Assembly: GCF_006345805.1 (NCBI RefSeq)
Contig: NC_042997.1
Coordinates: forward strand, 169,136,001 to 169,200,000
Reading direction: 5' to 3'
Length of the DNA stretch: 64,000 nt
DNA from: Octopus sinensis
Taxonomy: Eukaryota
The notes beneath the pieces are model-generated. The model was given only the letters and a program-made list of their open reading frames with translations, did not search any database and was not told where the DNA came from. Positions 2,871 through 63,527 of this stretch are shown in pieces; positions within the stretch are counted from its first letter, which is position 1; each line of letters starts with the position of its first letter. A program made the translations under genes and the position numbers.

Positions 2871-3076
2871 TATATACTTGTATTTCATGACTATTTTTTT
2901 TACCTCATTCAATTTTCTAAGTAAATCCCAACAGTTAATGCATGCCTTTGTAATTGTTTCTCCTCATTTGTTGCATTGGTGGCAAATAAAAGAAATCATT
3001 ATTGCTATCTTTTTTTGCATGAATTTCAAACAGTAAATAATGAAAGTAACAAACTATTAGGAAGCAAAACAATTAC

Positions 3077-3159
3077 CATTTGAGGATACTGACGCTTTCC
3101 AGTTATTCGTCCTGTTGTCGGTGGTGCACCTGTTTGAGAAGGCTGGGGTGGCATGGACA
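3077..3159 (-). CDS. SEC24B: Sec24A/B coding exon 4 (SMPPQPSQTGAPPTTGRITGKRQYPQM)
   Basis: Acceptor tttatattttcag|TG; donor ATG|gtaatt. 83 nt, phase 1 to 0. KRQYPQ resembles the KRVYPQ motif of yeast Sec24. The next exon lies outside the window. Confidence 0.8.
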
Positions 3160-4284: not shown

Positions 4285-7200
4285 CTGGAAATGATAAATA
4301 TATGCTATCAAACATCACCATTGAATTGAGAATGAATAAAATGATTATTTAGAGAGAAAAAAGCATTAATGACAAAAGAAGGGAAACATTTTAAATGACG
4401 TGCAGAGGAATCAGGAAAGCTAAAAGGATAAAAGTTAAAAAAGGAAGGAAGAACAGATAAAGAAAAAGGTGAAGAAAATGAAAATGATAATTAATAGAGA
4501 AGCATGACATTCCAAAGGTACAAAAAAAAGTTATAATGAAAGATTCATTAAACATATCTGGTTCTCTCCAACTAACTAAATTAGAATTACAAACCACTTT
4601 CTTTAAATAATCATGTTAATAAACTACTTCGTTAAAAGCTAACCAGATAATTCTATAATATTAACAACTACAAGTGACTACATATGTTCAGCTTTCAACT
4701 GCATATATATTAAGTTTAAATTAAAGTGAAACATTATTTTCTTAACTTCAGAGTAAGTTGGAGTGTTAATGGATTTTCTAACTTTATGGTTATGCTATAT
4801 TAGCATTTAGGATTTAAACAGCTACTAATCTTTTTTTTTTAAGTTATACAGAATTTGTTAAAGAAGGAATATTTAGCTGCTACATCGATAAACTGAATAG
4901 TTACTAAAAGCCCACTTACTAACAAAAAAAAAATGATAAATTAACCACTGAGGATACAAGAACTCCATATTCTTTAAGAAGACTTCCAGAAATACGTCTT
5001 CTCAAATGCAGGTATCTGTCCTCTCATACGACTTCTTTCATGCAGAACATTCCAATTCTCCAACACTATATACACACAGAAATATTTTTACATCATACCA
5101 GAAACAGGGAAACACTAACAGCAGACATACAACAACAAACTTATTATAGAGAACACTGTCGTAAACAAATTTTGGTTCAAATAAGAACAAAGCACATCAC
5201 CCCATATACTAATCACAAGCAAGACTAAAGAATATTAGTTCAATCCATACATCAGGTTCATTTATCCCTTTTGATATGAACCTGCTTGAGATTGTACCTG
5301 GCCTATGATACAAGATCTGAAAACCTATCACAGTTTCATATCAATTTATGCTCCAAACACCAGCTAAATAATGACAATATTATTTTACAGAATTTTTTCA
5401 TTATTTTTAGAATCAAACAAAGGCAGTGTATTTCAACAAAAATATGGTACTGAAAGGGGTAAAAGTCACCATTCCAGAAGTTCAAAAGTACCACATTTTT
5501 AGGCATCACATGCAATACATCAACATAATTTATGTGACATAATAAAGCAAAACCAATATACTGAGTCTATATCAACTCAGTCCTACCTTGGCTTCCAACA
5601 TGTTCCTCACAAACCACAGAAGTAAAAAAAAAAAAAAAAAAATCAGTAAGCAAATTATCCAATAAGACATTAGTAAATAGCTCTGCCTTCCCTTTTACTC
5701 AAGTTTTCCAGTACTAATTCATGAGTTTGATTTTAATTAACACTAACTGAAAAATGTAAATACAGTCTTGCAATACTTCAGCCTCTTTAGCAATCATAAA
5801 CGAAATATTCATCATGCAAATCAAAACCCACAAAGGATAAATCAGTCTACGTATATAGCCATAGAGTTAAAAAGTTTACTCTTCAACCATATGGCTCAAA
5901 GTTTAATCTTATAATGTAGCAGATATCTTCAATCACAGCCTTGGGTCAACTAAAGCCCTGTCAGTGAATTTCAGTCAGTAGAAACTGTGTGGAATCCCAT
6001 CATATATATATATTTATGCAGAAAGAGAGACAGACAGACAGATGCACACATATTCATTCATCATTAAACATCCATTTGCCATGCTGGCATGGGCTGGCTG
6101 GTTCACCAGGATCCGATGAGTTAGAGGACCACATTATGATCTTCCCAATGTCAATCACATTACGGAGAGTAGTGGGGTACTTTTTTTGTGGCACCACCAC
6201 CAGAGAGGATGTCTTGCAATTTGCAAAACTAAAGGGCTTAAACAAGCCTCTAACGACTGAAGGAGAAAAGATAAGAGGATGTTGAGGAGGTGGAGAAGCT
6301 ATAAGGAAGCAACAGTGACAGAAAAAAAGAGATGGAGGAGTGATGGATAGCAGTAGGATATCAACAGGTAGATGAAAGGGGTCATCAAGGATGCAAAGGG
6401 CGGCAGCAAATATAGGCTTGGCAGCATATATAAATATATATACAGATGTAAATAACCACACAATATATACATACAGAGAGAGAGCCAACAACACATATCT
6501 AATAGGGTTGACTGAAACCAAACTGCTGGCTACTTGTAGTTTCCTTACATGAAAACCCAAATTAAATAACTCTACAGTAATAAGCACTATTTTAGTTTCA
6601 TTTGTTACTAATGTGTGTGTGTGTGTGTGTGAATAAAAACATATACAGGTTAACTGATTACGGGAAGATTCAAATATTTCATGTTGAAAAGATTGTGCTT
6701 GGAAACCACTGCATGGTATCCATTTCAGAAATATGTATGTTTCTATATGATAAATAGACCTAGAAGGCTGAGGAACCAAATTTCACTCAAATCACACTCT
6801 ACAGTCTTAACATGTGCATATATACCAAAATGAACCCAGTGAGACTGATAAAATAAGGAGAGTAGAAAGTAATAGGATAACTAAACAAAAATTGTTGAAG
6901 ATGGAGGTCCAGCATGGCTGCAATCCAAAACTTGAAATCCGTAAAAAGAATAAAAGATATCTGTGTAGAATAGTGATGCTAAACAAATATTTATGACACC
7001 TAATGAACAAAAATATAAATACAATATACTGTTTTGAACTATTACATTCAACAGAGATATAAAGACATGTTCAGAATGTTAAAGATGAAAGCTAACATCC
7101 AAGAAATCAAAATATGAATAGAAATAGAATATGTATATAAAATCAACATTACTAACAGGCAAAAAACAAATCTCTAACAAAGTAATGTCAGATGACAAGC

Positions 7201-10415: not shown

Positions 10416-11571
10416 TAATTGATTGCTTATTTAATCAGTCAGTTGTCTGTCAAAGTTCTTTTGGCACTATTTACCACCTCATCAATTATATGCCCTCCCA
10501 TCTCCAGGTTTGCTTCAAATCTGTCTGGTTAAATGACTAGCCAATTGACTAATAATAAAGTGAAATTGAACCAGTGCATGTTTATTATTGGTATATTGAC
10601 CCTCTCAAGATACAACACTTCAATTTTATATCAAAATCATATACTTTTGATACACAAAATTAACGAAATCAATTTTGTCTCTCACCATCTAATTAATTCA
10701 AAATAACTACCATGACCATTTCTTAGGCAGTACAATTAAAAACAAAAAAAAAAAAAAAAAAAACTTACAAACTACTTTTGTGAAGATTAAATTATGCCCA
10801 TAATATATGTAACTGGAAGTTGTAAAAATTCCCCCAATTAAAACAACTCCTAATAACTGCTCCACCTTACAAAATCCTATATTTATATTACCATTAAACG
10901 ATGATAATGATGATGATTCCTAAGTAGGAACCTAAAAAGAAAAAGCACCAAAAAATTTTTACTCTTTGCCATCATTTTTGATATTATTATTGTGCATCCT
11001 TATATGTTGCATAAATATTTCATTAAGTGCTTGTTAAAACCCTCAGCTCCAGTTGCCCAAGCCACAATTTTAACTCTATGCTGTGAAAAAAAAAACATTA
11101 ATAACTCTAATAATTAAATTCAGCCTATTATCATTATATAAAATTATAAAAATGAATAGAATCTACTTACCAGGAACCAATAATAGCATAACAGTTTAAC
11201 ATCATAAACCTCAATATATCAATATCAAAACTGACTAGACATGGGAACCAATTCTTGCCAGAAAGGAATATTTCAATTGAATTGGCCCTTAGAATAATAT
11301 TTAATTGACCTGAGAAAATTGGAAATAAAATCATTTTGAGAAGATTTCAGGTGAGAATCTGTAAAGAAAGAAAGCTAAATACTGCAAGTTCAGTGCATGT
11401 GCTACCATTTCTGCCAATTCCGCCAACCTGATAGCAATAAAATTCAAAAATAGAAAATGCCAGATTTCATAAATGTATGCTTTTAAAAATCAACCAAAGA
11501 ATTATAGATATTTACCGTTTCAATTAAGGAAAATGCTGTATATAACAATAAAAAGTATGTGTCAACTTTAC

Positions 11572-12433
11572 CTTGCATATGACTTCCTGGAATCTGTCCA
11601 GAAACTGCAGGTGGATTTGGACTATTATTGTACTGAGCATCTGGTACAGGAGGAGTAGCATGTGAAAGAAGAGGAGGTCTTGAACTTGTGGGTGGGGGTC
11701 CAATTCCACCCATGTTACTTGTGGGGAGTGGTGGTCTTGGAGTTCTAGTCATAGGTGGCATACTCCCAATAGCACTGCTGGTGTTTGGATTTACAGGTCC
11801 CATATTATAACCAGGTATTTGCTGATGCTGTTGCTGATTTTGTAATGGTTGAGATGGTAATGGAGGCCTCATAGATCCTGTTGTTGAAGGATGACCGGCT
11901 GCAGGGTAAGTAGGTTTGGACTCACTAGAAAAGGGTACAATATTCTGTGGGGGGCCCATGGAATTTTTAGGATACTGGGCAATGGAATTAGGTTCCATAC
12001 TGCTGGGGCCATTAACAAAAGGCTGTGAAGACATAGGGGGATGAGGAGCACTCACAGAAGAAGGAACTAACATTCGAGGCCCACTATCTGATGGACCATA
12101 TTGACCAAGTGAACCTACATTTTGGGATGAAGCATAATTATATGATTGCCCTGATGACATTCTGGGAGGCCCACTTCTAACTGTGTTCATAGCTTGAGAA
12201 TGACCTATAGATGGAGGGCTACTAAAACCATTATAACTATTTGAGAGTGGAGGCAGTTGACCATGTGATTGTGGATGCTGCTGTTGTGGATGCTGCAACT
12301 GGGTAGGAGGCATTGAAGTCATCCCACTTGGTACACTAGCTTGTGGTTGGTAATTAGACATTGGAACATTCTGTGGTGGACCAAAAACTCCAGGAGGTGG
12401 CCCGCTTTTCATAGGCATAGGCGGTGCTGACAT
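11572..12433 (-). CDS. SEC24B: Sec24A/B-type COPII coat protein, first coding exon (Pro/Ser/Gln/Met-rich N-terminal region)
   Basis: Acceptor tttcttttttcag|CA ATG (exon starts 12435, ATG at 12433); donor CAAG|gtaaag at 11571. Open frame MSAPPMPMKSGPPPG...GSHMQ, ends in phase 1. Identity comes from the downstream exons (YDALEG, KRQYPQ), recalled as SEC24A/B-clade motifs; no database search was run. Confidence 0.8.
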
Positions 12434-12623
12434 TGCTGAAAAAAGAAAAAAAATCAAGAAAATATATATTAGAAAGTCAGAAAATGCTAAATCAATTTTA
12501 TCTTAAATTCTACTTCTACCCTACCCTTCATTTTAACAAAATATTTATACAAACCTTGAATTGCAATTAACCAAGTAAATAAATTTGCAGGTTCACTATA
12601 CAAATATAGAAAGACATTAACAA

Positions 12624-12920: not shown

Positions 12921-15279
12921 ATTAACTTGTATGATATAAGCTCTAATTTCAAACTGAAAAAATAATCAAGGCCCAGTGTAACAGTTAAAGCAGTCACCAA
13001 ACATGCAACATACAGTAATCATTCGCTATATTACGGTTCACCTATCACGCCCTTAGTATTTTATGGCTTTTTCTGGCTAATATATGTAAATTTATATCAT
13101 GGGTTTCTGTGGCCGATAGGTATTTATATTTTTTTTGGATAAATAAATCTCAGATGAAATACCAGTTTATTGTGTTTTGATAATTTGAAGAATTTCATAC
13201 TAAGTTACTTCAGATTTAACAAGAGCAAAAGCATAAACCAAAGGCAAAGTGCAAGATCCATTTACAAGAGTACGAATGGTATATATATATATATATATAT
13301 ATATATAACTGATCACTAGTTGGAACAAAATACACACACCTTTAGAACATAAATAGATTAATTTATTATCCTATGCAAATTTAAAATTGGCTAAATGCTC
13401 TCTTTTTAAACTAAATTTTCTAATAATAGTCTATTTTTATTTCATACTAAAAATTATTCAATATTTGAAATTGTCATATTTATAAATTTACTTTACAAAA
13501 TAATACATGAAAAAAACATTGCATAATCTGTAGTACATTTTACATTGAAAACTATCTTCTTTTATCTTTCCTTTCTTCCAGTCATTTGATGGTAGCCATG
13601 TTACAGCTTTAGTCAAACAAATCAACCCAAGTACTTATATATTTTAAAGCCTGGTACTTATTCCATTCGTCCCTTGACAGGGATGTAAACAAACCGACAC
13701 AGGTTGACAAGTAACGGGGGGTGGGGTGGGGGCAAACACAGATCATATATACACAACAGGCTTCCACACAGTTTCTATCTACCAAATTCACTCACAAGGC
13801 ATTTGTTGGTCCAGAGTAAAAATTATTCCATGAAAAGTTGCTTGGTAAACAAGTTATTTCAATGAAAAGTAATTCTAATAATGAAATGTTATTCAATGAA
13901 AAATCATTCACTATAGAAACAATAATTTATTGAAATGACTTTTGATAAAAGTCATTTCAATAAATTCTTGTTTCTATAGTCAATCAACAGAGATTCAATG
14001 AAAAGATGTTGCATAAAAGGTCACGGAACCAATGGAACAATAATATCTAATATGGAAATATATAGTTCCCCATTAAACAATGAAATCATTGTTTCACTGA
14101 CTTTCGATACAGAGTAATTACATCTTGTACAGTAATTACCTAAAAGATGGATGAGATCCATCTAGCTGACTGGACCTTAATACATTAATACAAAATTTTA
14201 AAGTGAATTTCCTATAATCCAGTGGTTTCTCTAAACCAGCAATCCACAACCTATTTTGTGCTAAGGACCGGTTTTATGCAAGACAATGTTTCTACAGTCC
14301 AGGGGATCCCTCGCATAAAACACAATAAAGTGCAAAATATATAATTTGATTGTTACATATATAATATATACATGATGCAAAAACAACCTGGAGATAGTGA
14401 AAATCAATAAAATAGAAATGAATAAATTATTCAATGAAAATTTAAATCTTCTATTGAAGCTTCTTAGTCCTCTAATAAAATACAAAGCCTTTTAACCTGC
14501 AACAACAGTGTTTAGAGACACTGGTTGCTCCAAGTGAAGATGTTACAAATCCTTTAGTCAGTTGTATTTTATAGGTGGATGAGAATTGTCTTGCTTTAAG
14601 CTTTTTAAACTCCCATACTACATTTTGCCAATTAAACAAGAGATATCCTTATTTCTCTCTCTGATGGTCACATTGTAGATAATTTTTCTGTCAAGTATTT
14701 GAAGAGAGCACATACTTCCATTGAAACAAGAAGATAAAAGGACAAGCTACATCACCTACAATTTCATACTCAATAGAAAAAGAGAAAAAACAGCTGATGC
14801 AAACACTTGTATAAAATAAACCTCAAAGATAAAATTTACTTTTTTTCAAAAACAGAAAGCAAACAAACAATGAATAGCTGTAGCTGCCAGAAAATATCAA
14901 TCAATAAACACTAATACAAACATTGACTTAGTTCAAAAACTCTTAGCAACAAAGCAAATGTTCAGCATCAAATTCCACCAGTTGAACTCAAAATTCAAGA
15001 GATCAAAAACCAGTTTATTGCAATACTTCTTATATTTCAATTATTGTGATACATTTTATAATATTGTGACACATCTTAAAAATTCGGAAAATAAAACTTT
15101 TATCAATTGATTCCATCAGTTGTTATACTAAGTCTATAACAGTTTCTAAATAATTTAACTATAGACAAGGAAAAGGAGTTAACATATAGACCCATTCACA
15201 ATATTAGGTATGTAGAAGGGAAGTGGCTGAGTAAAAAGTTATTTTGATAACTTTTTATTAATTTCTGAATACAAATCTA

Positions 15280-16539
15280 TTGAGTCATCCCATAAATAAT
15301 GCGGTTTTTTTATACTTCTTTTATTTTTCAAAATTAAGATAGTTCTTTTTTGATTTAAAATATACTCTCCTTCATTTTCTACAATGCTTTTCCATCTACC
15401 CAGTAGACTTGCAAGGCCCCTCTTCCAAAATTCACTTGTCCGTGACAAAAAATACTCCTCGAGTACTGTTCTGACCTCATCTACAGAATTCACATTTTTT
15501 CCATCCAAATGATTTTGAAGACTACGGAATAAGTGATAATCAGATGGGGCAATGTCTGGCAAATATGATGGGGGGGGGGGGCAGTGTTTCCCATTCAAAC
15601 TGCTCCAGTGCCTTTAGAATGTCATCCTTGCTGTATGTGGTCAAGCATTATCTTGAAACCAAAGATGGTTGTTTTTGTACTAGTGCTGACTTAAGCCACT
15701 CAAGCTGCTCGCAGAAAATTTCTTTTGTTATCGTTTGGTTTGGGTTTAAAAGTTCAGAGTGGACCAAACCTTCCATATCCCACCAAACAGATAACAACAC
15801 CTTATGTGGGTGAATACTTTTTTTAGCCTGGGATGCCAGTGTTTCTCCTTTCCCTACCCAGTCTTCAGTGCTTTTATAGAAAACCCATTTCTCATCACCA
15901 CTTACTATTCAGTTCAAAAAAAGTTCATTAGTGAGATGTGACGGCAAAGAAGAGCACACATTCACTCACTGCATGCGATTAGACTTGGAAACTTTGTGAG
16001 GAACCCATTGACCCAATTTGCTGACTTTTCCGATGGCACACAGGTGTCAATGAATGGTTGAATGACCGAATCCATTCAAGCTTCTCTGCTAGTTCCTCAA
16101 CAGTTACAATGGGATTTTGTTCCTCCAGGGTTTACAGGATGTCTTTGTTGAGCTCTACAGACCTTCCAGGACAAGGCTGGTCTTCTAGGCTGTAGTTTCC
16201 AGCTCAGAATTTCTGGAACCACCATTGACACTGGCTTACACTTATTGTCCAATCCTCATATACTGCATTAATATTCCTCGCACTTTTCATTGCATTGTTG
16301 CCTTTATTGACCCCATAAAGCAAAATATGCTGAATATGCTCCTTTGTCACTTACATTATAGCTTTAAAAAAATAACTGTTAAAATTGAACTGCACTCTTC
16401 AAAACTTGCACTAAGAATAAGTACAAGGTAAAATTACTACCTGCTTTTATAGTAAGTTGATACAGGTAGTTTATTCCATTCCCCTCTGACTTTTAGTTCA
16501 TGCAATTGAAAAAAACGCACTATTTATGCAATGACCCAA
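15280..16539 (-). mobile_element. Full-length but decayed mariner transposon
   Basis: TA|TTGAGTCATCCCATAAATAATGCG...CGCACTATTTATGCAATGACCCAA|TA, 1260 bp. The ORF remnant PSYLPDIAPSDYHLFRSLQNHL...RWKSIVENEGEY matches the mariner YSPDLAPSDY motif. The rest of the transposase is broken. Confidence 0.9.
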
Positions 16540-36349: not shown

Positions 36350-36687
36350 CTAGTAAAGGATAGGTTTACACATGTTGTATCTTGAATAAATTTCCAAAAA
36401 CAGTACTGAATAGGAAGATGTCCCTATTCCTTATACTTATGAAGCAGGAGTTACCTTCATTTAATGTTCAATTTTCTATGCTTGATTGGGTCATATAGAA
36501 TTTGGTGAGGCAGATTTTCAACAGTCAGATACCTTTCCTGTCACCAACCTTCATGTTTCCAAGTAAAGTAATATTGCCTCAAGGCCAGATATGTTTTTCA
36601 CGGAAGACACCACTTGTATGACAATGATGCTCATTTACAACCATCAAAGGCTCTCAAGGCAAGGGTATATATAAACACACACACAGC

Positions 36688-38200
36688 CTCTGTACTTGGC
36701 TTTTGTTGACTTGGAGAAAGCCTTTGACAGGGTCTCCCAATCCCTTATCTAGTGGTCAATGCGGAAACTAGGGATAAACAAGTGGTCAGTGAAAGCTGTA
36801 CAAGCCATGTAGAGGGATGCTACCAGTAAGGAGAGGGTTGCCAATGAGTACAGTGAAGAATTCAGAGTACAAGTAAAGGTTCACCAAGGATTGGTCGGCA
36901 GCCCCTCTTGTTCATCACAGTCCTCCAGGCAATAAAAGAGGAATTTAAGACAGGCTGCCACTGGAAGCTCCTCTATGCTGATAATCTTGTTCGTATAGCT
37001 GAATCACTATCAGAACTAGAGAAGTTTCAGGTATGAAAGCAAGGTCTAGAATCAAAGGGCCTTAGAGTTAACCTAGCAAAAGTCAAAGTCTTAGTAAGTA
37101 GGAAGGCAGGATCACAAATCCCTTCAGGTAGACGGCCCTGCTCGATCCGTAGAAAAGGTGTAGGTAGAAACTCCATAAAATGTACTCAGTGTAAGCTATG
37201 GACACATAAGAGATGCAGCAATATCAGAGGAAGGTTAACAGAGAAAATAGCTTTTGTGTGTGGAGGATGCACAGGTACAACAAACATCAAAAATGTACCG
37301 AAAATAGACTCCATCAACTGCCAGTGGGGTAAGCTAGAAGTAATAGATAGCTTCTGTTATCTAGGTGACCAAGTTATTAGTGGAGGTGGATGCTCCGGGA
37401 GTGTAGCTGTGAGAATAAGATTAGGCTGAGCAAAGTTCAGAGAGCTCCTACCGCTGCTGACAACAAAGGGCCTCTCTCTCAGAGTGAAAGGCAGATTGTA
37501 TGATGCCTGTGTGTAAACAGCTATGTTACACTGCAGTGAAACATGGGCTGTGACAGTTGAGAACATGCATAGGCTTGAAAGAAATGAAGCCAGTATGCTT
37601 CGCTGGATGTGCAATGTCAGTGTGCATGCTCGATAGTGTAAGCATCTTGAGAGAAAAATTGGGCACGAGGCATTAGACAACTGCACTGGTATGGTCATGT
37701 GATGCATATGGACAAGGACAGCTATGTAAAGAAGAGCCAATCTCTAAATGTGGAGGGAACCTGTGGTAGAAGTAGACCCAGCGAGACATGGGACAAGGTG
37801 GTGAAGCATAATCTTCAAACTCTGGGCCTCAGAGGCAATGACTAGTGACTGAGTACCTTTGAGCATTGGGCATCATGGAGGCTAAGTGGTTGATACCAGT
37901 GGCACGTGAAAAGCTTCTTTCAAGTGTTGGGCCTCACAGAGGCAATAACCGAGACCTTTGGTATTATGTTGTGTTTGAAAAGAAGACCCATCAAGCCAAG
38001 TAAAATCACAGTCATGGCAGATACTGGTGTCATACAAATGGCACCCATGTCAGTGGCACATAAAAGCACCCATTACACACTCAGAGTGGTTGGCATAAGG
38101 GCATCCAGCCATAGAAACCATGCCAAATCAGACTAGAGTCAGGTGCAGCCTCCCAGCTTGCCTGCCCTGGTTAAACCATCCAACCCAGGCGAGCATGGAC
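36688..38200 (+). mobile_element. 5'-truncated RTE-clade LINE (RT domain, PHD-like finger, 3'UTR)
   Basis: Translates to LYLAFVDLEKAFDRV, then LYADNL (YADD equivalent), GLESKGLRVNLAK and SFCYLGD, with stops and frameshifts. Followed by the shared GTGCC..GGCAC/TAAAAGCACC 3'UTR. Confidence 0.88.
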
Positions 38201-42439: not shown

Positions 42440-43590
42440 GCTTCATCATCATCAACGTTTAACGTCCGTTTTCCATGCAGGGATGAGTTGGGTGGTTCAA
42501 CCAAGGTAAGGGAAGCCAGGAGGCTGCACCAGGCTCCAGTCTGATATGGCAGTGTTTCTACAGCTGGATGCCCTTCCTAACGCCAACCACTCCATGAGTG
42601 TAGTGGGTGCTTTTTATGTGCCTCCGACACAGGGGCCAAGGGTGGCTGGCAATGGCCACGATCGGTTGGTGCTTTTTACATGCCACCAGCAACAGAAGCC
42701 AGTCAAGGCAGCACTGGCATTGGCCACGTTCGGATGGTGCTTTTTACGTGCCACAGGCACGGGTATCACAACTACAATTCCCATTTGAATTATATTTTGA
42801 TGTTGATGTACTTGACTCAATAGGTCTCCTCAAGCACAGCAGGTCACCCCATGATCCAAGGTAAGCACAGCAGGCTGTCCTGCAATCCGAGGAACTTTGG
42901 ATGGGCTGGGCTTTTTATGTGAAGCTGGTGCAAGAAACAGCCATGAACTCATGTTATTTGTCGGGTCTTCGCAGTCACAGCATATTTCCAGAGGTCTCAA
43001 TCTTTCGTCATTGCCTCTGTGAGGCCCAACATTCGAAGGTCATGCTTGACCACCTCATCCCATGTCTTCCTGGGTCTACCTCTACCCCGGATTCCTTCAA
43101 CTGTTTGGGAGTGGCACTTCTTCACACATCTCTCCTCATCCATCTCTAGTACATGACCAAACTAGTGCAAACATCTCTCTTGCACGCCACATCCAATGCA
43201 TCTTATGTCCAACATTTCTCTCAGGGTGCTTACACTCTGTCATGTGTGCACACTGACATTACACATCCAGCGGATCATGCTAACTTCATTTCTTTCGAGC
43301 CTACGCATGTCCTGCACAGTCACAGCCTATGTTTCACTGCCATGAAGCATGGCAGTTCACACACATGCGTCGTACAATCTACCTTTCACTCTGAGCGAGA
43401 GACCCTTTGTCACCAGTAGGGATAGAAACTTTCTAAACTTTGCCCAGGCTATTCTTATTCTAGTGGTGACACTCTCTGAGCATCCACCTCCACTACTGAC
43501 TTGGTCACCTCGGTAGTGGAAGCTATCAACTACTTCTAGTTTCTCACCCTGTTTTCTGAGTAGCTGTGGTGTCTATTGCCCCTGTGCATC
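42440..43590 (-). mobile_element. RTE LINE 3' fragment with 3'UTR and (GAT)n tail
   Basis: Reverse complement of the same RT C-terminal sequence seen at 37350-37850 and 62511-62916; tail catcatcatc at ~42445. Confidence 0.8.
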
Positions 43591-45579: not shown

Positions 45580-46150
45580 TATCATCATCATTTAACATCC
45601 ATTGTCCATGCTGGCATGGGCTGGACAGTTTGGCCAGATCTGGCAAGCCAGGAGCTGCACCAGATTCCAGTCTGATTTGGCATGGTTTCTACAGCTGGAT
45701 GCCTTTCTTAATGCCAACCACTTTACAGAGTGTGTTGGGGTGCATTTACATGGCACCACACAGGCACTTTTATGAGGCACTGCCATGAGTGCTTTTCACC
45801 ACCAGAGGGACAAATCTCAACATTTCTGCTGCGGAATACGGGTGCCAAGGTTCTCGGTCCTCAGTCATCTCACCTGAAAGGTTCAACATCTTGAAGTCAT
45901 TGTTCAGTACTTCATCCTATATCTTCCTGAGTCTCCCACTTCTATGTGTTCTATCTACTTTGAGAGACTGGTACCCATTTGAATCACAAAACCAAACCAG
46001 CATAGTCTTCTCTCTTGTACACAACAACTAACTCCTCATGCCTAACTTCTCTCTCAAAACACTAGCACTCTGTCGAACATGTGCACTTACATTACACATC
46101 CAGCAGAGCATACTAGCCTCATTCCTTTCTAACCTTTGCATGTCCTCTGC
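45580..46150 (-). mobile_element. RTE LINE 3' fragment
   Basis: ORF 46028-46270 contains CEMWALNAEDMQRLERNEASMLCWMCNVS; 3'UTR and (GAT)n tail follow. Confidence 0.8.
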
Positions 46151-46666
46151 ATTCAGGGCCCACATCTCACACGTTTCTATTTTATCCAACATTACAATAA
46201 TGTAAAATACCTTACAAAATGATAAAATGTCACAAGTTTTTAAATTAACAACAGGGGCAATGGAAGCCAAAGAGAATAGGGGTTACTAACAAAAAAAAAC
46301 ACACAGACAGAGCAGTCAAAAAGAGATAAACTTTTTGATCCAACAAAAACAATGAATAAAAGGCAGAGAGAATTGAATATAGTAGATGGCAGCCATTACA
46401 AGTAGGAAGTAAAAACAAAAATATACATGCACTTTGTAACCTTCACTGAAATTTCAGTTACTGCTTTCAGAGTAACACTCATAACACCAATCAATTCAGT
46501 CATGTCTTATATTGGACAGTCAATCATAATCAAAACCTGCCAGTCTACCAAGTTTGTGATTATTTCATTTATAGTGACCAAGCAATTGTGTATGTGTATA
46601 CAGTCCTGTTCAAAAGATATTTATTACTATCTAGTCCAAAGGTAAAGAAACAAACAAGTCCATAAC

Positions 46667-46984: not shown

Positions 46985-47016
<32 letters not shown>

Positions 47017-47019
<3 letters not shown>

Positions 47020-47196
47020 GGGCAAAGGAAAGTGATTGCGTCACTCATAGCCTCTCCTCTCCAGGTGTAATGATCGCTGCAGAACTTCTACTTGGCTGTG
47101 CCTTGTGGAAAGTTCTTGCTAATGGCCTCTCCTGCACTACTGTGTCCACAGCAGCACCTTCACGCGGTACCCCCTGTTCTCACTGAGCCTGCTGTG
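47017..47196 (+). ncRNA. Putative HDV-like (CPEB3-type) self-cleaving ribozyme
   Basis: P1 GGGGGGC (47017-23) / ACCCCCT (47169-75); P2 CACAGCAGC (47147-55) / G(C)CTGCTGTG (47187-96); P3 ACC/GGT with L3 TTCACGC; J1/4 GT; J4/2 CTGA with candidate catalytic C47183. Folded by eye. Confidence 0.6.
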
Positions 47197-47577
47197 TGGC
47201 GCGACCGGGTGCTTGGCGGTATAACCAGGTGGGCAGACTGGGCTCGTTAGCCTTGGTTGGCAGCCAGTCTAGGAGAAGGAAAACTCTGACTCCAAACCCT
47301 CGCTCCGCTGCCTTGCGGATGCTCTTGGGAGAGGGAAAGGCTATGGAGTAAACCCAGACAGAAAATCCGGAGTGGAGCCCCGAAGGCGGTAGGGTGTCGA
47401 ATCTCGACCCCTTTCCGGCAACTCCTGCAGCCAACCAGACTCCAAACGTACTGCACTGCATTCCTTTGGATTATGTCTGGGGGGCCGAGAGGGAGATTCT
47501 GGTGTCCGGGCAGCCCAGTGTCTTCGTTTCTACCGCCCAGGCTTGCGCCATGGAGAAACTACTCCATCGATGGATGA
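47017..47577 (+). mobile_element. Short non-autonomous RTE-like element inserted in a (TA)n tract
   Basis: GC-rich 560-bp block bounded by (TA)n on both sides. Contains GGCAGCCAGTCTAGGAGAAGGAAAACTCTG, recalled as typical of RTE 5' regions. No RT ORF. Confidence 0.6.
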
Positions 47578-50500
47578 TATATATATATATATATAGTAGA
47601 TCCACCACCCAGATATGTAAATAATACCATACAAATAGTATTTTGACCTTTGTTTAGTCAACAACAGTTTACAGTTACTTAAGTATTTTCTAGCACTGTA
47701 AAATTTAAACCTAGCCCCTGGGAATTGTTCTGCTTATGTTATACAAGTCTTATTTGATTTAGAGCTTTAACATCTAGATTTCAAAGATTTAGACATTTTC
47801 AAAAAAATGCAGAATTTTTGTAAATTATTGGACACTGTTAAACATTATTTAGCAAATTTGAGGAATGTCATTTATGTGTAAAAAATTATGATTATGCTAA
47901 TGCTGGATGTTAAAACATTTTTAGAATGTTGGTGCCACATAAAAAGCACTGGTGCAGTTGCCATGTAAGAAGCACCGAGTACATTCTGTAAAGCAGTTGG
48001 CATTAGGAAGGGCATCCTGCCATAGAAATCAAACCAAAACAGACTTTGGAACCTAGTGCACCTCCTATCAAACCATATAACCCATGCCAGCATGGAAAAC
48101 AGACAAATGATGATGATGGCAGCAAAAAGGAGAAAGTTAATGGAAAGCAAGCTCTGAAGAATTACAATGAACATATCTTGAGATCCGGAAGACTACAAAA
48201 ATCTATATATCTATCTGAGACATAAACACATAATCAATAGCACTGTCCAAACACTGGTCCATTTTTTGGACCTTTCTCTGCATCCTCTACAACCTGTAAA
48301 CTAATAACTGTGTCAAAAATACATTCACTTTGTGTAACCATCTCTTTTACTATCATTAATTTATTAAGTTTCACTTCACAAGCTCCATGTTAAATACTTC
48401 ATCCACATCCTTCTTAAAACCGCATCTCATCTAGCTACAGATTTCCCTTCAATGACCAGCCTACTTAAAATGTAATTCTACAACTAATGAACTAATCTCA
48501 CTATTAAGTTATTCTCATCCTTAAGTCTTTGAGATCCTAAAAAGGACACAGGTATTGAAATCTTTTCCTGTTTTCTTTTTTTTTTATTAATTTTTACTGT
48601 TTTAAATCTGAATCCCCATGCTAACAGAAATAATGGTTTTGTGAAATTAGATATTTTCCTCTTGTATAAGCAATTCTTTTTACAAATGTCTGGTGTTGAC
48701 CATTTAGCTATGACTTAGGTGTAACTGAGTCAAATTTGGATTAAGGTCAAACACAGTGGTCATAGCAAAATTTAAATACATGACCATGCAGTTTGTAGCC
48801 CATGATCAACCTCACAGCTATTGTGCTCCCAAAAGAGACAAAAATCAATGCCTGTATTAAAATACTGATGAACACCCAAGTTAAAATTAGGGAACATTTA
48901 ACTTAAATGTATGCCTTTAGCATCATCATTTCTAGTTTTCCTCTAATATGTTTAAAACATTGAAGTATTGAATGTGATTTTACTACAGGTAAATTGACTC
49001 TTCAAATTCACTTATTCATACCATACTAGAAATGGATTTTATTCTTTCCTTTTCAAGCCATTATCTCTTCTTTATTCTACTAAATTATCACAATGGAGAA
49101 GCATTTACTTTTCAGTGAAATAAACAATGACAAATCTAGTAATATGCTATACTTTTCCATTATTAAGACCATAGCATTATACTGAATATTCTCTAACCCT
49201 TTTGTTACAATATTTCTGTTGAAATACATTGCTTTTGTTTCAATTAATTTTGAAAATAATGAATTTAGTAAAATAAAATTGTCGTCATTTAGCTGGTATT
49301 TAGAACATGACAAGAAATGATGGCTTAAAAACATGTAGTTTGTACTAGAGTACCAAGGATAGTCTCCAATAAGTAGGTATCAAAAGGGATTAAAAATCTT
49401 CATCAGTACAGGTAATTAAAGATTAAATATGCTAAATTTTCAAGCCAACTTATGTACAATATTCTTCAACTATTTCACAATTTTCTTTTTTGTTTCAACA
49501 ACCATGGCAATGTTTTACTGGGAGAGTTTTCTCCCATACTTGCCAAAATTATTAAAGCAATAATAATCACTGTCTTGATGTTATCTTTTCACCGCATAAT
49601 CAATTCTAATTAGGTTTTTGACACTGCTACATTAACATTAGAAGTAAAACTAAGTGCTAAGCAAGGGCACTATATTCTTCAATCTCTGTTAGCAATTTAA
49701 CTTTTTTTATACTTCCAGTCTTAAATACCAATTTAATAATGACAAAGTTACTTTACTAAATTCATTATTTTCCAAATAAACTAAAACAAAGATAAAGTAT
49801 TTCAACAGAAATATGGTAACTAAAAGGCTTGGATTTCACTTAAGGTATGTGACAACATGTCACAACAGAAATATTTTCCAAATTTTAAATATTTTAATGG
49901 CATTTCGAGGATCACAATCATTCCTATAAACTACTGATAAATTCCTTCTTTCTACATTCTAACCAAAATTTTATTTAAAACCATTTGACTAATAACATTT
50001 TAGTCTTTAGTAGGAAAAAAAGGACTGAACATAAATGTAAATTTTGTTTTTAAAATCTCTATATTAATGAATAATTTCGATGTTTTACAAACAAAACAAA
50101 ATACTGATCACTGCTAAATATCGTAAAGTCCCTTTAAAAGAAAAGTCACAACATGATTTTGTTTGATTCAGAGCTGGGGTGGGAATGTCGTTTTAACATC
50201 GTTTATATTACTGTTCTTGGCAAAAGCATGCCAATCACAACAACTCCTGTCTGACTAAAATGCAAAGAATGCAAGAAAGTTACGTGCAAATGTCTTTCCA
50301 TAAGAGTATCCAATGTCAAGTAAACAGCTCTTCCGATATCAAATGTTGATGGAACAGAGCAAAGACAATCTCTCTTATTTTCCCTAGGCCATAGTTACAC
50401 CCATGTCTACACTACCCAAAGTGTCCTCCTTTCAAATCAAGAGGGTGGGATTTGAGGAAGACTTAGCTGCTACTTCTCCTAGGTCGAACGATTGTACAGA

Positions 50501-57408: not shown

Positions 57409-59239
57409 GTATGTCATGTGACAAAGATATTAAGAAAGAGCTCAAAATGACAGAAAGTGATCAACAATCAAAAAACACACCTACTGGTTCAATATTTAAT
57501 AGTCATGAGTAAACTGTAACCCACTGTACATTGTGAATGGCATGTCAACAAAAAAAAACGACCTTGAATTTTTTAGTAGTGTGGCCCACCTGATGATGAG
57601 TCACGTCTTTTTGAAAGGTTGCCATACCTGCTGTAAAGGAATAAACCTTGATTAAATATTCAGTGTTTGTTACTTTACATCTCCAATGATCAGGTCGACT
57701 ACATTTGCTCATACAAATAAGAAAACAATCTTGGTGAAACATATGAAATATACTGATAGGAGCAGGTATGGTTGTGTAATAAAGAAGCTTTTTATGCAAC
57801 CGCGTAGCTTTGGGTTCACTCCTATTTGGGCAAGCATCTTCGGCTATAGCTCCAGCCTTACCAATGCTTTGTGAGTAAATTTGGTCGACAGAAATTGTGT
57901 GGAAGCCCATTATATCTACCATCTCTCTCCTGCTCCCCTTTGCATTCTTGCTGTCTTTCACTCTCTCTCTTTCCCTTGTTTTTCCCTCTGGCTGGGTGAC
58001 CATGTATCTCCTCTAATCCTTGACCCCCTCCCTCTCTCTCCTTTTCTTGCTCTTCCCTCTGGCTGGGTAACCATGTATCTCCTTTACAACAGCACATCTG
58101 TTTCTGTTCCCATTCTTGTTAACTCTCTCTCTCTCTCTTTCTCTCTAGTTGGGTAGCCATGTACCTCCTCTACAGCATGACAGCAGAAATCTGGTACAGT
58201 CTTCTGCCTGGGCCAGCTCCTGTCAAACCATCCAACCCATGCAAGCATGGGAGGCAGACATTAAATGATGATGTGTGTGTATTTGTGTCAGTGTTTGCGA
58301 GCCCTTCTCCCTGACAACCTCTGTTGGTTTGTTTCATATCCTAATAGTTCAGCAAAAGAACAAAAAAAAAAAACAGAAAGAAGTTCCAGGGTCAATTCCT
58401 CCAACTAAAACTTTTCAAGGCAGTGCCCCAGCATGGCCACAACCAATGATTGAAAAAAGATATCATTCTGCTAGCAACAACTAAGTTAGTTGTAACTATC
58501 TATTTATGTAGTCAACTTTGTCTTTCATCCTTTTGGTGGGTGATGAAATAAAAACCAGTTGAGAACTGGCGATGATGTAAAACCCCTCCTCAAAATTTTA
58601 GGCCTATTATCATTAATATCATTTATACCAGGCCATTAGAAATAACATGACAGTAAACTATATTTCATAAAATTTTGGGTACCAGTGCTATTTTCCTTTG
58701 ATCTTTGGCAAAGATTGAACTTATACTCTAACCCTAATTAGAGTAATAGATTATCAAAACCATATACTTTCAGGCATGATGCAAAACAGCACAAATGATT
58801 GATTTGGGGAAAAGAAAATTCTCTTTTTTTTCACAAAAATCAGCAGCAAGATCCAATCAAATAGAGTACTAGATTTGATGTTTTACCTTCTTTAATTCAA
58901 AGCCTCCACTGTTCAGAGATCAAATCTCACAGAAATTAGCTTTGTCTTCACATTCTTTTTGAGGTCAATAAAATATATGAAGTGTGAAATAGTTTTAATT
59001 ACTTATAATTATGGATTTCTTGTGCAAATCTGTTTGAGAGATAAATCAGATACAGGATTTCAGATGTATCTTAGTTTTATAGCCAGTCATCATTATCGTG
59101 AGGAATTTAGTATTTGAGACATGTGATTCCTAGTTTAAATACAGCAAAATTAAGTCACTGTAACATCCAGGATCTTTCCAAAGCCTCACTTATCTATCAC
59201 CTCATCCTTGATGTATTTCTCTATCTATTTTTGAGTCAG

Positions 59240-59895
59240 AAATCAGGTGTGGCGTGCAAGAGAGACCACTGCACTGGTATGCTTATGTGTTACATATGGA
59301 TGAGGACAGCTGTGTAAAGAAGTGCCAATCTCTAACTGTGGAAGGAACTTGTGGAAGAGGTAGACCCAGGAAGACCTGGGATGAGGTGGTGAAGCACGAC
59401 CTTCAAACATTGGGCCTCACTGAGGCAATGACAAGTGACTGAGACCTTTGGAGATACGCTGAGAAGACCCAGCAAGCTAAGTGAGATCGTAGCCAGTTTA
59501 ACCGGCCCATTTAAGAGTTTCCTTCAATTGTCAAGCAATGTGCTGAGCTATTAAGTCAAGTAAAATAGCTGTCATGGCCAATGCCAGTGCCGCCTGACTG
59601 ACACCCATGCTGGTGGCACGTAAAAAGCACCATATGTGTGTGGTCAATGCCAGTGCTGCCTGACTGACTCCTGTGCTGGTGGCATGTAAAAGGCATCATT
59701 CAAGCATAGCTGATGCCAGTACCACCTGACTGGCACATAAAAAGCACCCACTACACTCTCAGAATGGTAAGCGTTAGGAAGGACATCCAGCTGTAGAAAC
59801 CTTGCCACATCAGATTGGAGCCTGGTGCAGCCTCTTGGCTTGCCAGTCCTCAGTCAAACCATCCAACCAATGCTAACATTAAACGACGATGATGA
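59240..59895 (+). mobile_element. RTE LINE 3' fragment
   Basis: ORF 59254-59442 HMDEDSCVKKCQSLTVEGTCGRGRPRKTWDEVVKHDL; 3'UTR with repeated modules; gatgatgat tail. Confidence 0.85.
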
Positions 59896-62336: not shown

Positions 62337-62500
62337 GGCGCAGGAGTGGCTGTGTGGTAAGTAGCTTGCTTACCAACCACATAGTTCCAGGTTCAGTCCC
62401 ACTGCATGGCACCTTGGGCAAATGTCTTCTACTATAGCCTTGGGCCGACCAAAGCCTTGTGAGTGGATTTGGTAGACGGAAACTGAAAGAAGCCCGTCGT
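62337..62500 (+). mobile_element. tRNA-derived SINE, family A (head half)
   Basis: GGCGCAGGAGTGGCTGTGTGGTAAG...GAAAGAAGCCCGTCGT followed by (TA)n. Confidence 0.8.
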
Positions 62501-62510
62501 ATATATATAT

Positions 62511-63395
62511 AGCCATGCTACATGGTAGTGAAACATGGGCTGTGACTGCTGAGGATATGCGTAAGCTCGCAAGAAATGAAGCCAGTATGCTCCGATTGAT
62601 GTGTAATGTCAGTGTTCATAATCAACAGAGTGTAAGTACCTTGAGAGAAAAGTTGAACCTAAGAAGCATCAGTTGTGGTGTGCAAGAGAGACGTCTGCGC
62701 TGGTATGGGCATGTGACGAGAATGGGTGAAGATAGTTGTGTGCAAAAGTGCCAATCCCTAGCAGTTGAGGGAACCTGTGGAAGAGGTAGACCCAGGAAAA
62801 CCTGGGACGAGGTAGTGAAGCACGACCTTCGAACTTTAGGTCTCACCAAGGAAATGACTAGAGACCGAGACCTATGGAAGTATGCTGTGCGTGAGAAGAC
62901 CCGGCAAGACCAGTGAGAGCAGTCAAAATCAAACCAAATCAACATCAGTGGAAATTGCAGCTGTGGTTAAGCGAACCATCTGATCGTTTGTCCGTTGCCA
63001 GCCTCGCCTGGCCCCCGTGCCGTTGGCACGTAAAAGCACCATTCGTTTGTGTCCGTTGCCAGCTTCGACTGGCCCCCGTGCCATTGGCATGTAAAAGCAC
63101 CATCCGCTCGTGTCCGTTGCCAGCCTCGCCTGGCCCCCGTGCCGGTAGCACATAAAAGCACCATCCGTTCATGGCCGTTTGCCAGCTTTGTCTGGCACCT
63201 GTGCAGGTGGCATGTAAAAAGCACCCACTACACTCACGGAGTGGTTGGCGTTAGGAAGGGCATCCAGCCGTAGAAACACTGCCAAATCTGACTGGGCCTG
63301 ACGAAGCCTCCCGGCTTCACAGACCCCAGTTAAACCGTCCAACCCATGCTAGCATGGAAAACGGACGCTAAATGATGATGATGATATATATGGCC
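62511..63395 (+). mobile_element. RTE LINE 3' fragment with intact C-terminal ORF and modular 3'UTR
   Basis: ORF 62515-62916 MLHGSETWAVTAEDMRKLARNEASML...RRLRWYGHVTRM...GRGRPRKTW. Four ~61-bp modules; (GAT)n tail. A second short 3' end follows at ~63393-63490. Confidence 0.9.
62975..63222 (+). repeat. Four tandem 61-63-bp units in an RTE 3'UTR
   Basis: Units start at 62975, 63038, 63099 and 63160; each has a GTGCCnnnGGCAC-type hairpin followed by GTAAAAGC. Confidence 0.9.
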
Positions 63396-63490
63396 TGGTG
63401 CAGCCTTCGGGCTCCCCAGACCCCAGTTGAACCGTCCAACCCATGCTAGCATGGAAAGCGGATATTAAATGATGATGATGATGATGATGA

Positions 63491-63527
<37 letters not shown>

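Follow-up and report, generated by a model that had tools for sequence, protein, structure and literature searches.

Eickbush and Eickbush reportedly found, in 2010, an HDV-like ribozyme at the 5' end of R2 retrotransposons. Ribozymes of this kind are also known from the promoter-less RTE and baggins elements (Ruminski et al. 2011, as cited in PMC6765202) and from the 5' end of L1Tc (PMC3185411). In all of these elements—and in the octopus element described here—the double pseudoknot is the very first sequence. Cleavage sets the 5' end of a co-transcribed element that has no promoter, and the RTE host has a single ORF for APE and RT, and SSR ends. Long J1/2 domains activate HDV-like ribozymes; in large ribozymes of the drz-Agam-2 type J1/2 forms a P1.2 domain, a long structured insert between P1 and P2 that is expected to bring both helices together, and the octopus site has an insert of this general kind (PMC4908430). 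Minimal P4-less, or theta, ribozymes, as PMC6326823 summarizes them, come from microbiomes and phages, lack a J1/2 insert, and like the octopus site have a short linker for P4 and keep the catalytic core; activity is established for natural HDV-like ribozymes that lack P4 (Riccitelli et al. 2014, cited there). The CPEB3 ribozyme (RF00622) occurs as a single copy in a conserved intron, without a J1/2 insert and with a P4 of 7 bp, and in all these respects the octopus site is unlike it. Comparable in another way are the R2 'SIDE' elements (PMC3414825), non-autonomous elements that have lost the ORF but retain from the parent both the 5' ribozyme and the terminal 3' sequence.

The window (the whole 64-kb stretch of Octopus sinensis DNA that was analysed) contains an insert of 561 bp, with a G+C content of 57% against ~37% in the surroundings. 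It starts at G47017, directly 3' of (TA)16, and its last bases, ATGGATGA, reach 47577 and are followed by (TA)9 (Table 1). We take it, with a probability of roughly 0.8, to be an ORF-less, non-autonomous copy of the 5' end of an RTE element, lodged in a (TA)n tract, the first 180 nt of which are an HDV-like ribozyme. Compared with the known ribozymes at non-LTR 5' ends, it belongs to a new host phylum—the cephalopods, with related families in marine metagenomes—and it is undetected by Rfam, has a J1/2 of 123 nt, and has neither a P4 nor an ORF. On this reading the element is a new member of an already known type, the ribozyme-capped RTE, in a new host and in an unusually CPEB3-like form without P4. 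As a natural retroelement ribozyme, it joins a long J1/2 with a near-absent P4. That J1/2 is unrelated in sequence to those of the drz-Agam-2 type and its effect is predicted only, and the loss of P4, set beside the minimal ribozymes in the form in which PMC6326823 presents them, may be a mutation of this single copy.

Table 1. Features of the octopus insert and its flanks (positions in the window)
Feature	Position	Strand	Remarks
(TA)16 microsatellite, 5' flank or insertion target	46985..47016	.	Tandem Repeats Finder, sequence reading
Whole insert: RTE-clade LINE 5' end (ribozyme and 5' UTR) plus short tail (probable)	47017..47577	+	Composition; homology to 5' regions of APE+RVT_1 elements
P1, 5' strand GGGGGGC	47017..47023	+	Pairs with 47169-47175; in relatives this strand directly follows the flank
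J1/2 peripheral domain, 123 nt	47024..47146	+	Predicted fold of -34 kcal/mol, closing helix AGGA/UCCU
P2, 5' strand CACAGCAG(C)	47147..47155	+	Pairs with 47189-47196
P3 ACC (47156-58) / GGT (47166-68), closing the 7-nt L3 TTCACGC (47159-65)	47156..47168	+	L3 rules from PMC6326823
P1, 3' strand ACCCCCT	47169..47175	+	Pairs with 47017-47023
J1/4 GU, forms P1.1	47176..47177	+	P1.1 as described for CPEB3
Linker UCUCA, 5 nt, in place of P4	47178..47182	+	Covariance model alignment: 5 nt against 21 model positions
J4/2 CUGAGC, candidate general-acid cytosine C47183	47183..47188	+	Aligned to CUAAAC, invariant in four RTE families, and to CGAAUU in CPEB3
P2, 3' strand CTGCTGTG (as RNA CUGCUGUG)	47189..47196	+	Pairs with 47147-47154
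Conserved RTE 5' UTR domain, 3' of the ribozyme, non-coding in this copy	47266..47569	+	blastn, alignments, RNAalifold structure
Tail ATGGATGA, 8 nt, possibly an SSR-type RTE 3' end	47570..47577	+	Without counterpart in the relatives' 5' UTR
(TA)9 microsatellite, 3' flank	47578..47595	.	Sequence reading

The site was first noticed in a sequence-only reading, and when the sequence was re-read and re-extracted all of the helices proposed there were found in place. Membership of 47017-47196 in the HDV-like double-pseudoknot structural class is confirmed: the segments follow one another in the nested order P1-(J1/2)-P2-P3-L3-P3'-P1'-J1/4-J4/2-P2', with no P4 helix among them. P1 has seven positions, beginning with the wobble G47017·U47175, continuing with five G-C pairs, and ending with C·A at the top; cleavage is predicted between A47016 and G47017. 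P2 may gain a ninth pair, C47155-G47187, if C47188 is bulged, and U47159 and G47164 agree with the conserved U and G of L3. P1.1 consists of G47176-C47161 and U47177·U47160, and so has a single Watson-Crick pair where the RTE relatives have two C-G pairs. J4/2 fits the pattern CNRA. A nearly P4-less core with C47183 as the candidate catalytic cytosine had been proposed, and both points hold, for the linker is 5 nt long and the relatives' CTAAAC aligns C47183 as the J4/2 cytosine.

The relation to RTE elements comes from the sequence 3' of the ribozyme. A six-frame query with the element led to P0038, a 627-aa Exo_endo_phos protein, and the relatives are families from marine metagenomes and sequencing-run assemblies. 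One of them carries the name 'craniofacial development protein 2-like', shared with a gene family that goes back to BovB, the bovine RTE element. Full-length relatives, on contigs of 3.3–5 kb, have a single ORF of ~1050–1096 aa with Exo_endo_phos and RVT_1, an architecture that the published description of RTE elements matches (PMC2887409). By blastn, nt 250-553 of the element (47266-47569) are 71–80% identical to the 5' UTRs of L039, L040, L041, L042, L049, L051 and L052, and nt 347-540 align with positions 4420-4612 of L039, a TARA relative, at 74% identity (E 1e-30). This homology with single-ORF APE+RT elements supports the relation to the RTE clade that had been suggested for the octopus element. 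Between lineages, the ORFs of P0038 and P0042 share ~48% of their amino acids, and the UTR domain shows 71–80% nucleotide identity; this conserved domain is a candidate translation or RT-binding element. In the octopus copy it is frameshifted with respect to the TARA ORF call, the region of the ORF start being affected, and 47017-47577 holds no APE or RT coding sequence, so that the copy has no ORF of its own and is non-autonomous. What had been described as a 560-bp non-coding retro-element is therefore ORF-less indeed, but does not represent a non-coding element in its own right: it consists of an RTE LINE's nt 1 to ~553, with ribozyme and conserved 5' UTR, and of a tail of 8 nt. The earlier reading placed it antisense within a putative second gene; inspection of the window's ORFs by eye turned up no exons of such a gene.

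In four related RTE families the 5' end has this double pseudoknot as well, built from different helix sequences. In L039, P1 is GGGGTGT/ACACCCC, P2 CTCACGTG/CACGTGAG, P3 GGC/GCC, L3 TCCACGC, P4 CCGCC/GGCGG and J4/2 CTAAAC, and the arrangement is the same in L047, in L043, and in L042, L051 and L052. No ribozyme was found in L040, L044-L046 or L048-L050, where either the contig begins within the UTR or a different family is involved, nor at the apparent 5' end of the related family L044/L049. Covariation in P1, P2 and P3, proposed as a check on the structure, was sought across related RTE families and is present: with one core per family, in an alignment fitted manually to the structure, with five RTE lineages only, 92.8% of cells pair, and both sides change in 10 of 20 pairs, including all three pairs of P3. 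Slid-alignment controls give 0–5 such pairs and 39–46% pairing. A covariance model, R1, built from the RTE relatives with the octopus sequence left out, has one significant match in the window, 47147-47196 (23.3 bits, E 4.9e-4; the next scores 10 bits, E 3), and its alignment agrees with the P2, P3, L3 and J4/2 read earlier.

A descriptor drawn from the general rules for HDV and CPEB3 ribozymes gives the same answer. It specifies a 7-nt P1 starting with G, a P2 of at least 6 bp, a P3 of 3 bp, a 7-nt L3 of the form U-Y-C-N-N-G-N, J1/4 as G-G/U, and J4/2 as C-N-R-A-N-N. It matches once in the window, both strands included, at 47017-47196, and once in L039, at the 5' end of the LINE. In 288 kb of unrelated loci it matches nowhere, and neither the 100 dinucleotide-shuffled versions of the window nor the 20,000 shuffled versions of the element contain a full match. 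Because the descriptor is absent from shuffles and control loci alike, the motif is non-random. The sequence-only reading had proposed a descriptor or Rfam scan, and on the Rfam side nothing was found: at the gathering threshold the window has no match to a ribozyme family, and at E values up to 10 an 801-nt stretch and the 66-nt core match no HDV-type family, RF00622 included. The ribozyme sites of the RTE relatives match no Rfam family either. As a control on the search, a true CPEB3-type ribozyme in L006/L008 was detected at 66.5 bits.

That the double pseudoknot lies at the exact 5' boundary of a retroelement, as the earlier reading had it, is borne out by the descriptor, by the covariance model and by the position of G47017 next to (TA)16. 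L042, L051 and L052—members of one family, from one assembly, with differing flanks—all begin at the P1 G-run, within 1 nt, and L039 begins at G1 of a perfect 7-bp P1. The pair at the cleavage site is G-C, not G·U, in two relatives. J1/2 is 29–99 nt long in the relatives, against 123 nt in octopus, and between them no convincing alignment of J1/2 was obtained; J1/2 and core are 54–60% identical. The homology of the ribozyme part rests on position and structure rather than on sequence. RTE 5' ends defined by ribozymes are in this way extended to the cephalopods, as well as to a number of related families found in marine metagenomes or sequencing-run assemblies, none of which any Rfam model detects; the alignment and descriptor are ready for use in annotating such ribozymes.

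To judge by the family, a promoter-less RTE element would be transcribed within host or neighboring transcripts. The ribozyme would then cut between A47016 and G47017, so that the element RNA would begin at G1 of P1 with a 5'-OH, and target-primed reverse transcription could yield a full-length cDNA starting at G1. Because full-length cDNA would start at the cleaved G, insertions would begin exactly with the P1 strand, and the ribozyme would be retained. In full-length elements the folded ribozyme and the UTR domain at 47266-47569 may aid cap-independent translation, as well.

Self-cleavage by the octopus copy itself is uncertain, given a linker of 5 nt where the relatives have a 21-nt P4 stretch. 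P4 is absent, P1 contains C·A, P1.1 has one pair, and the C/U-rich tracts of J1/2 are able, in the MFE fold, to pair with the 5' G-run; on these grounds the copy may be slow or inactive. A competing mini-hairpin, CTC-ACT-GAG at 47179-87, had been held up as a further hindrance, and although it exists, it has only 3 bp. There is a substantial chance, though we would put it somewhat short of even, that the octopus ribozyme is a dead relic in which the loss of P4 and the weakening of P1 and P1.1 abolished cleavage, the motif recording nothing but the parent's biology. All four related families have a P4 hairpin of 4–5 bp, and the octopus copy has in addition no ORF, a frameshifted ORF-start region, and C·A atop P1 with U·U in P1.1. 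Yet CPEB3 functions with the same C·A and U·U (PMC4836649), and natural P4-less ribozymes do cleave (as reported in PMC6326823). The positions held to be catalytic are all intact—the G·U at the site, U...CG in L3, C-N-R-A in J4/2, P2 and P3—and the CpG-containing L3, intact in octopus, has decayed in L041, L042 and L047.

How the short copy arose is a separate matter. It may be an internal-deletion derivative, formed no later than insertion through a jump between templates, from SSR tail to 5' UTR, in the manner of the R2 SIDEs; these, unlike the octopus element, form multi-copy families with a recognizable 3' UTR, whereas one octopus copy is known and its '3' end' is 8 nt long. Alternatively, while both the ribozyme and the derivation from an RTE stand, a later genomic deletion, microsatellite-mediated for example, would have left just these 561 bp, in which case there was never a retrotransposed short element, nor a family of them. 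We regard this as the lesser possibility, doubtful but worth serious attention. The 'ribozyme-SINE family' first envisaged finds no support: the insert is an RTE 5' UTR with an 8-nt tail, and no second copy turned up in the 64-kb window (blastn, word size 7) or in two protein-space searches of its reading frames, in which the 93-aa antisense ORF gave no homologues and the sole match was one related RTE; nor did a full-length octopus parent come to light. The missing copies speak for a later deletion, but weigh little, since the databases searched hold almost no octopus non-coding DNA. Parental 5' UTR homology runs to ~47569 before it breaks off, no more than 8 nt short of the 3' (TA)n, and the TARA relative L039 is likewise truncated: it has the 5' UTR and the endonuclease, yet lacks RT and an obvious SSR tail. 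Against a later deletion, the same (TA)n lies on either side, as expected of one insertion event, and ATGGATGA followed by (TA)n resembles the 3' end described for RTE elements, whose 3' UTRs are very short and built of SSR units (PMC2887409). The relatives end in (TG)n and (CA)n; the L048 contig ends in (CCAT)n, where its 3' end may be cut off. We weakly prefer the internal-deletion derivative.

The sequence-only reading had called the ribozyme CPEB3-like, and in its core it is: 38 of 50 positions are identical to human CPEB3, compared with 28–31 of 52 shared with its own RTE relatives, and 22–26 of 51 between those relatives and CPEB3. Membership in Rfam CPEB3, or in another HDV-type family, does not follow, as the site stays under every threshold with RF00622. 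Three CPEB3 traits named in that reading, concerning L3, P1.1 and C·A, are borne out by the RF00622 consensus used for the comparison (GGGGGCCAcaGCAGAAGCGUUCACGUCGCGGCCCCUGU...CGAAUUCUGCU) and by PMC4836649. In CPEB3, P1.1 combines a G-C with a U-U pair, and nt 30, G in the chimpanzee ribozyme, is A in the human one (PMC4836649); being A, it creates the mismatch C7·A30 in human CPEB3. The two sites have in common a G-rich P1 with G·U at the cleavage site and C·A at the top, a 7-nt P2 strand (ACAGCAG/CUGCUG), L3 UUCACGN (identical at the six positions UUCACG), J1/4 GU, the stretch CCCCUGU, a P1.1 of C-G and U·U, and a J4/2 of CNRA followed by 2 nt. P3 and one pair of P1 differ by compensatory changes.

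Could this likeness reflect common descent, CPEB3-type ribozymes having come from the octopus RTE ribozyme lineage or shared a source with it? The identities just listed, and the greater nearness of the octopus core to human CPEB3 than to the RTE relatives, speak for this, but when each helix is counted once the score is ~24/32 against a baseline of 17/32, a modest excess, and convergence is plausible in so small and constrained a fold. P4, J1/2 and context are unlike those of CPEB3, and RF00622 leaves the site unscored. Intermediates in retroelements are missing as well: a scan of metagenome, prokaryote-genome and viral collections with the pattern CACAGCAG-N3-8-TTCACG-N5-8-CCCCTGT found no copies of the octopus type, but only matches due to chance or lying in coding sequence (one Streptococcus gene in 24 genomes) and the CPEB3-type ribozyme of L006/L008, which occupies a single locus and has no similarity to RTE elements. 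We consider common descent unlikely. Just as unlikely is the fuller scenario that would go with it, in which a cephalopod RTE lineage has a CPEB3-type ribozyme, and the ribozymes of the mammalian CPEB3 intron and of L006/L008 descended from such a retrotransposon 5' ribozyme and were later put to use by the host. If it were true, the CPEB3 ribozyme would gain a traceable origin, and the CPEB3-like core is a concrete lead, if an improbable one, on the source of the mammalian ribozyme.

It is very improbable, finally, that short complementary segments have come together by chance in some other kind of G+C-rich insert—a Naiad Penelope-like pLTR, a minus-strand Helitron, a tRNA-SINE—even though Octopus has Naiads, which insert into (TA)n (PMC8557442), the first bases of the minus strand are TC, with a small hairpin close to the opposite end, and Rfam finds no match, for the shuffles, the covariance model from the relatives, and the homology and covariation results argue strongly the other way. 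A Naiad, of a group that lacks hammerheads (PMC8557442), is ruled out by homology to APE-type RTE elements, with none to GIY-YIG elements, and has only the (TA)n target in common with the insert; flanks of this kind are common in the window, which has ~14 (TA)n tracts, and they lie beside other LINE copies, too. A minus-strand Helitron would suit the TC start and the far hairpin, yet the terminus lacks CTRR, and homology to RTE elements speaks against it; a tRNA-SINE is rejected because ARAGORN finds no tRNA. As a parent for the insert, the window's other LINE family, which has the motif RRLRWYGHV and (ATG)n tails, was rejected in turn: it shares just 24–36% identity with the RTE relatives, in short stretches, and is hence a different family.

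The insert at 47017-47577 (+) is 561 bp long and has a G+C content of 57%, against approximately 37% in its surroundings; at 47577 its 3′ end reads CCATCGATGGATGA, and (TA)9 follows. Judged by sequence comparison, the decisive step in naming it was to concatenate its six-frame translations and use them as a query: the match was P0038, a protein of 627 aa that carries an Exo_endo_phos endonuclease domain and is encoded by L039, a TARA metagenome scaffold. At the DNA level, L039 4420-4612, just inside the start of the called LINE ORF, is 74% identical to element nt 347-540 (E 1e-30). P0038 has 18,475 relatives in the whole library (HMMER), and the full-length ones, on contigs of 3.3-5 kb, comprise a single ORF of ~1050-1096 aa with Exo_endo_phos and RVT_1 domains. 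One relative carries the name 'craniofacial development protein 2-like', that of a gene family that arose from BovB, a bovine RTE element.

Element nt 250-553 are 71-80% identical to the 5′ UTRs of further relatives, and this similarity ends 8 nt upstream of the 3′ (TA)n, so the insert consists of nt 1-~553 of an RTE element—the ribozyme and the 5′ UTR—followed by ATGGATGA. It has no coding capacity, and compared with the TARA ORF call its ORF-start region carries a frameshift. No homologue was found for its longest spurious ORF, and no tRNA was found. The main point of the sequence-only reading, that the RTE-derived insert has its 5′ boundary set by an HDV-like ribozyme, was right, and its description of the ribozyme region matches the sequence exactly on re-reading.

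The same fold occurs in related RTE families (see table). In L039, a G+C-rich LINE starts at 4130, after an A+T-rich flank; L047, L043 and the L042/L051/L052 family, other loci of related elements, share its arrangement with other helix sequences, and L041 represents the L039 family in decayed form. We aligned by hand, without gaps, a single core from each family (octopus, L039, L047, L052 and L043) together with human CPEB3 and the metagenome contig L006. Standard pairs occupy 92.8% of the alignment cells versus 72.7% in shuffles, both sides change in 10 of 20 pairs, and all three P3 pairs covary, while sliding the 3′ partners as a control leaves 0-5 both-side-changed pairs and 39-46% pairing; since the structure guided the alignment, these counts are biased towards it. 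A covariance model built from the RTE relatives only, with P2, P3 and P4 nested and with neither octopus nor CPEB3 sequence, is free of this bias. With filters off, its sole significant match in the window is 47147-47196 (23.3 bits, E 4.9e-4); the next best reaches 10 bits (E 3). The model places P2, P3, L3, the P1 3′ strand and J4/2 as they had been drawn from the sequence, and at P4 the octopus copy has 5 nt versus 21 model positions, that is, P4 is missing.

Features of the octopus insert, of related loci and of the surrounding DNA (window coordinates unless a locus is named)
Feature	Position	Sequence or remark
Octopus 5′ flank	46985-47016	(TA)16, sequence reading
Octopus P1	47017-23 with 47169-75	GGGGGGC with ACCCCCU; G.U, five G-C, C.A mismatch
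Octopus J1/2		123 nt, between P1 5′ strand and P2
Octopus P2		CACAGCAG with CUGCUGUG
Octopus P3		ACC with GGU
Octopus L3		UUCACGC
Octopus J1/4		GU
Octopus linker		UCUCA, 5 nt, between J1/4 and J4/2
Octopus J4/2		CUGAGC
L039 P1	3′ strand 4259-65	GGGGTGT with ACACCCC; perfect pairing
L039 J1/2		96-99 nt, by choice of P2 start (11 or 8 bp)
L039 P2		CTCACGTG with CACGTGAG
L039 P3; L3; J1/4		GGC with GCC; TCCACGC; GG
L039 P4; J4/2		CCGCC-tcagct-GGCGG; CTAAAC
L047 P2		CTCACTTG with CAAGTGAG
L043 P2		CTCACCAG with CTGG(C)TGAG
L042/L051/L052 P1		GGGGGGT with ACCTCCC
L042/L051/L052 P2		CTCACATA with TATGTGGG
5′ UTR domain	47266-47569; L039 ~4340-4620; L052 ~2800-3130; L040 10-117; L049 897-965	3′ of ribozyme
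CPEB3-type ribozyme	L006 4852-4941 (JGI24158J21664_10037919); L008 8811-8900 (Ga0210059_1000457)	RF00622, 66.5 bits, E 1.6e-16
Microsatellites at 5′ junctions	L042 4540-4586; L051 2560-2618	(AAT)n
Microsatellites at 3′ ends	L043 4697-4721; L047 4079-4091	(CA)n; (TG)n
Second LINE family	36594-37842 (+); 42958-43584 (-); 45773-46282 (-); 59212-59439 (+); 62497-63491 (+)	5′-truncated copies

A descriptor written from general HDV/CPEB3 rules and scanned on both strands finds one match in the 64-kb window, the ribozyme site at 47017. It has no match in unrelated loci totalling 288 kb, nor when the window is dinucleotide-shuffled 100 times or the element shuffled 20,000 times. Rfam gives no match at the site, either at gathering thresholds or, with short stretches, at E up to 10; the same tool gives a true CPEB3-type ribozyme 66.5 bits. 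The site thus lies outside every curated Rfam family, and membership of the CPEB3 family is unsupported.

The CPEB3 features given in the sequence-only reading are confirmed by the Rfam consensus and by PMC4836649. The octopus core is identical to human CPEB3 at 38/50 positions and to its RTE relatives at 28-31/52; the relatives match CPEB3 at 22-26/51. When each helix is counted once, the octopus figure is roughly 24/32 over a baseline of 17/32. This excess is suggestive but also fits convergence, the fold being small and constrained. When blocks common to octopus and CPEB3 were sought by a pattern scan, no intermediate forms appeared in retroelements, and we consider common descent of the two unlikely. 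What the scan did find, at a single locus, is a full, true CPEB3-type ribozyme, on contigs L006 and L008 (98.8% identical), with a compensatory change in P1 (GGGGGTC/GACCCCT) and a P4 that is longer than, and different from, that of the Rfam consensus. No LINE ORF lies downstream of it, and it has no similarity to these RTEs; it may be a CPEB3-type ribozyme outside Rfam's mammalian set.

The 5′ ends agree with the fold. L042, L051 and L052 belong to one family in one assembly; their flanks differ—(AAT)n, (AAT)n and unique sequence, respectively—yet all three copies start at the P1-forming G-run, within 1 nt; L039 starts at G1 of P1, and the octopus copy at G47017, directly after (TA)n. The relatives' 5′ ends therefore coincide with P1, as had been proposed. 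By analogy with the ribozymes of RTE, baggins, R2 and L1Tc (PMC6765202), a promoter-less element would be transcribed within longer transcripts, the ribozyme would cut on the 5′ side of G1, releasing an RNA that begins with the ribozyme; a complete cDNA would then begin at G1, which would explain the 5′ boundary of the insert. Long, structured J1/2 domains are known to draw P1 and P2 together and so activate HDV-like ribozymes (PMC4908430).

Self-cleavage by the octopus copy itself is uncertain, to judge from its sequence. The core positions are all intact (G.U at the site, U...CG in L3, C-N-R-A in J4/2, P2 and P3), and its C.A and U.U features are common to active CPEB3 (PMC4836649). In place of P4, which all four related families keep, it has only a 5-nt linker; HDV-like ribozymes that naturally lack P4 do cleave (PMC6326823).

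Why is the copy so short? We weakly prefer to see it as an internal-deletion derivative from reverse transcription, in which the 5′ UTR became fused to an SSR tail, because it ends in SSR-like ATGGATGA and then (TA)n, and has (TA)n on both sides; R2 SIDE elements (PMC3414825) are comparable internal-deletion derivatives. Later deletion of a full-length insertion is a slightly less favored reading. The 'ribozyme-SINE family' suggested earlier is unsupported: no other copy was found in the window or by protein-space search, an absence that carries little weight. L039 4130-6450, itself cut short to ribozyme, 5′ UTR and endonuclease (ORF stop at 6270, no RT domain), is a second case of an intact 5′ end with a missing 3′ part.

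Microsatellites of various units bound the related copies, in line with the reported RTE-SSR link, and the L048 contig ends in (CCAT)n. In the window, (TA)n is very frequent (~14 sites, e.g. 7315, 13280, 20404, 22230, 32490, 41273, 50854 and 63490) and often stands at repeat ends, so a (TA)n flank is not specific to this insert. A literature lead to Naiad Penelope-like elements, whose target in octopus is (TA)n (PMC8557442), was later rejected.

The 5′ UTR domain is 71-80% identical in nucleotides between RTE lineages, versus ~48% in amino acids for the ORFs (one pair compared, P0038 and P0042). Its indel lengths are not divisible by three, and RNAalifold predicts a multi-hairpin fold with a few compensatory pairs. 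We regard the domain as a candidate functional RNA, with translation or RT binding as its possible role. In L043, 19 nt that could form a hairpin (GCTG...CAGC; 708-733) are inserted within L3, an unusual place in an HDV-like fold. The apparent 5′ end of the L044 family (GTAGACGG..., also in L049) has no visible ribozyme, and the 5′ end of the L044 contig (1-145), a perfect inverted repeat of itself, is probably an assembly artefact.

Elsewhere in the window, at least five 5′-truncated copies belong to a second, different LINE family marked by a C-terminal RRLRWYGHVxRM motif. The best-preserved starts directly after (TA)n and ends in (ATG)n and then (TA)n; its 3′ UTR contains 61-bp tandem repeats (62989-63225). 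P0008, which comes from a LINE family of the window other than the insert's RTE, is annotated Octopus vulgaris, in support of the octopus host supposed in the sequence-only reading. By eye, an ORF at 15239-15598 (-) is similar to a mariner-type transposase in its C-terminal part, and a 324-aa Pro/Gln/Ser-rich open frame at 11483-12457 (-) looks like a large host-gene exon.
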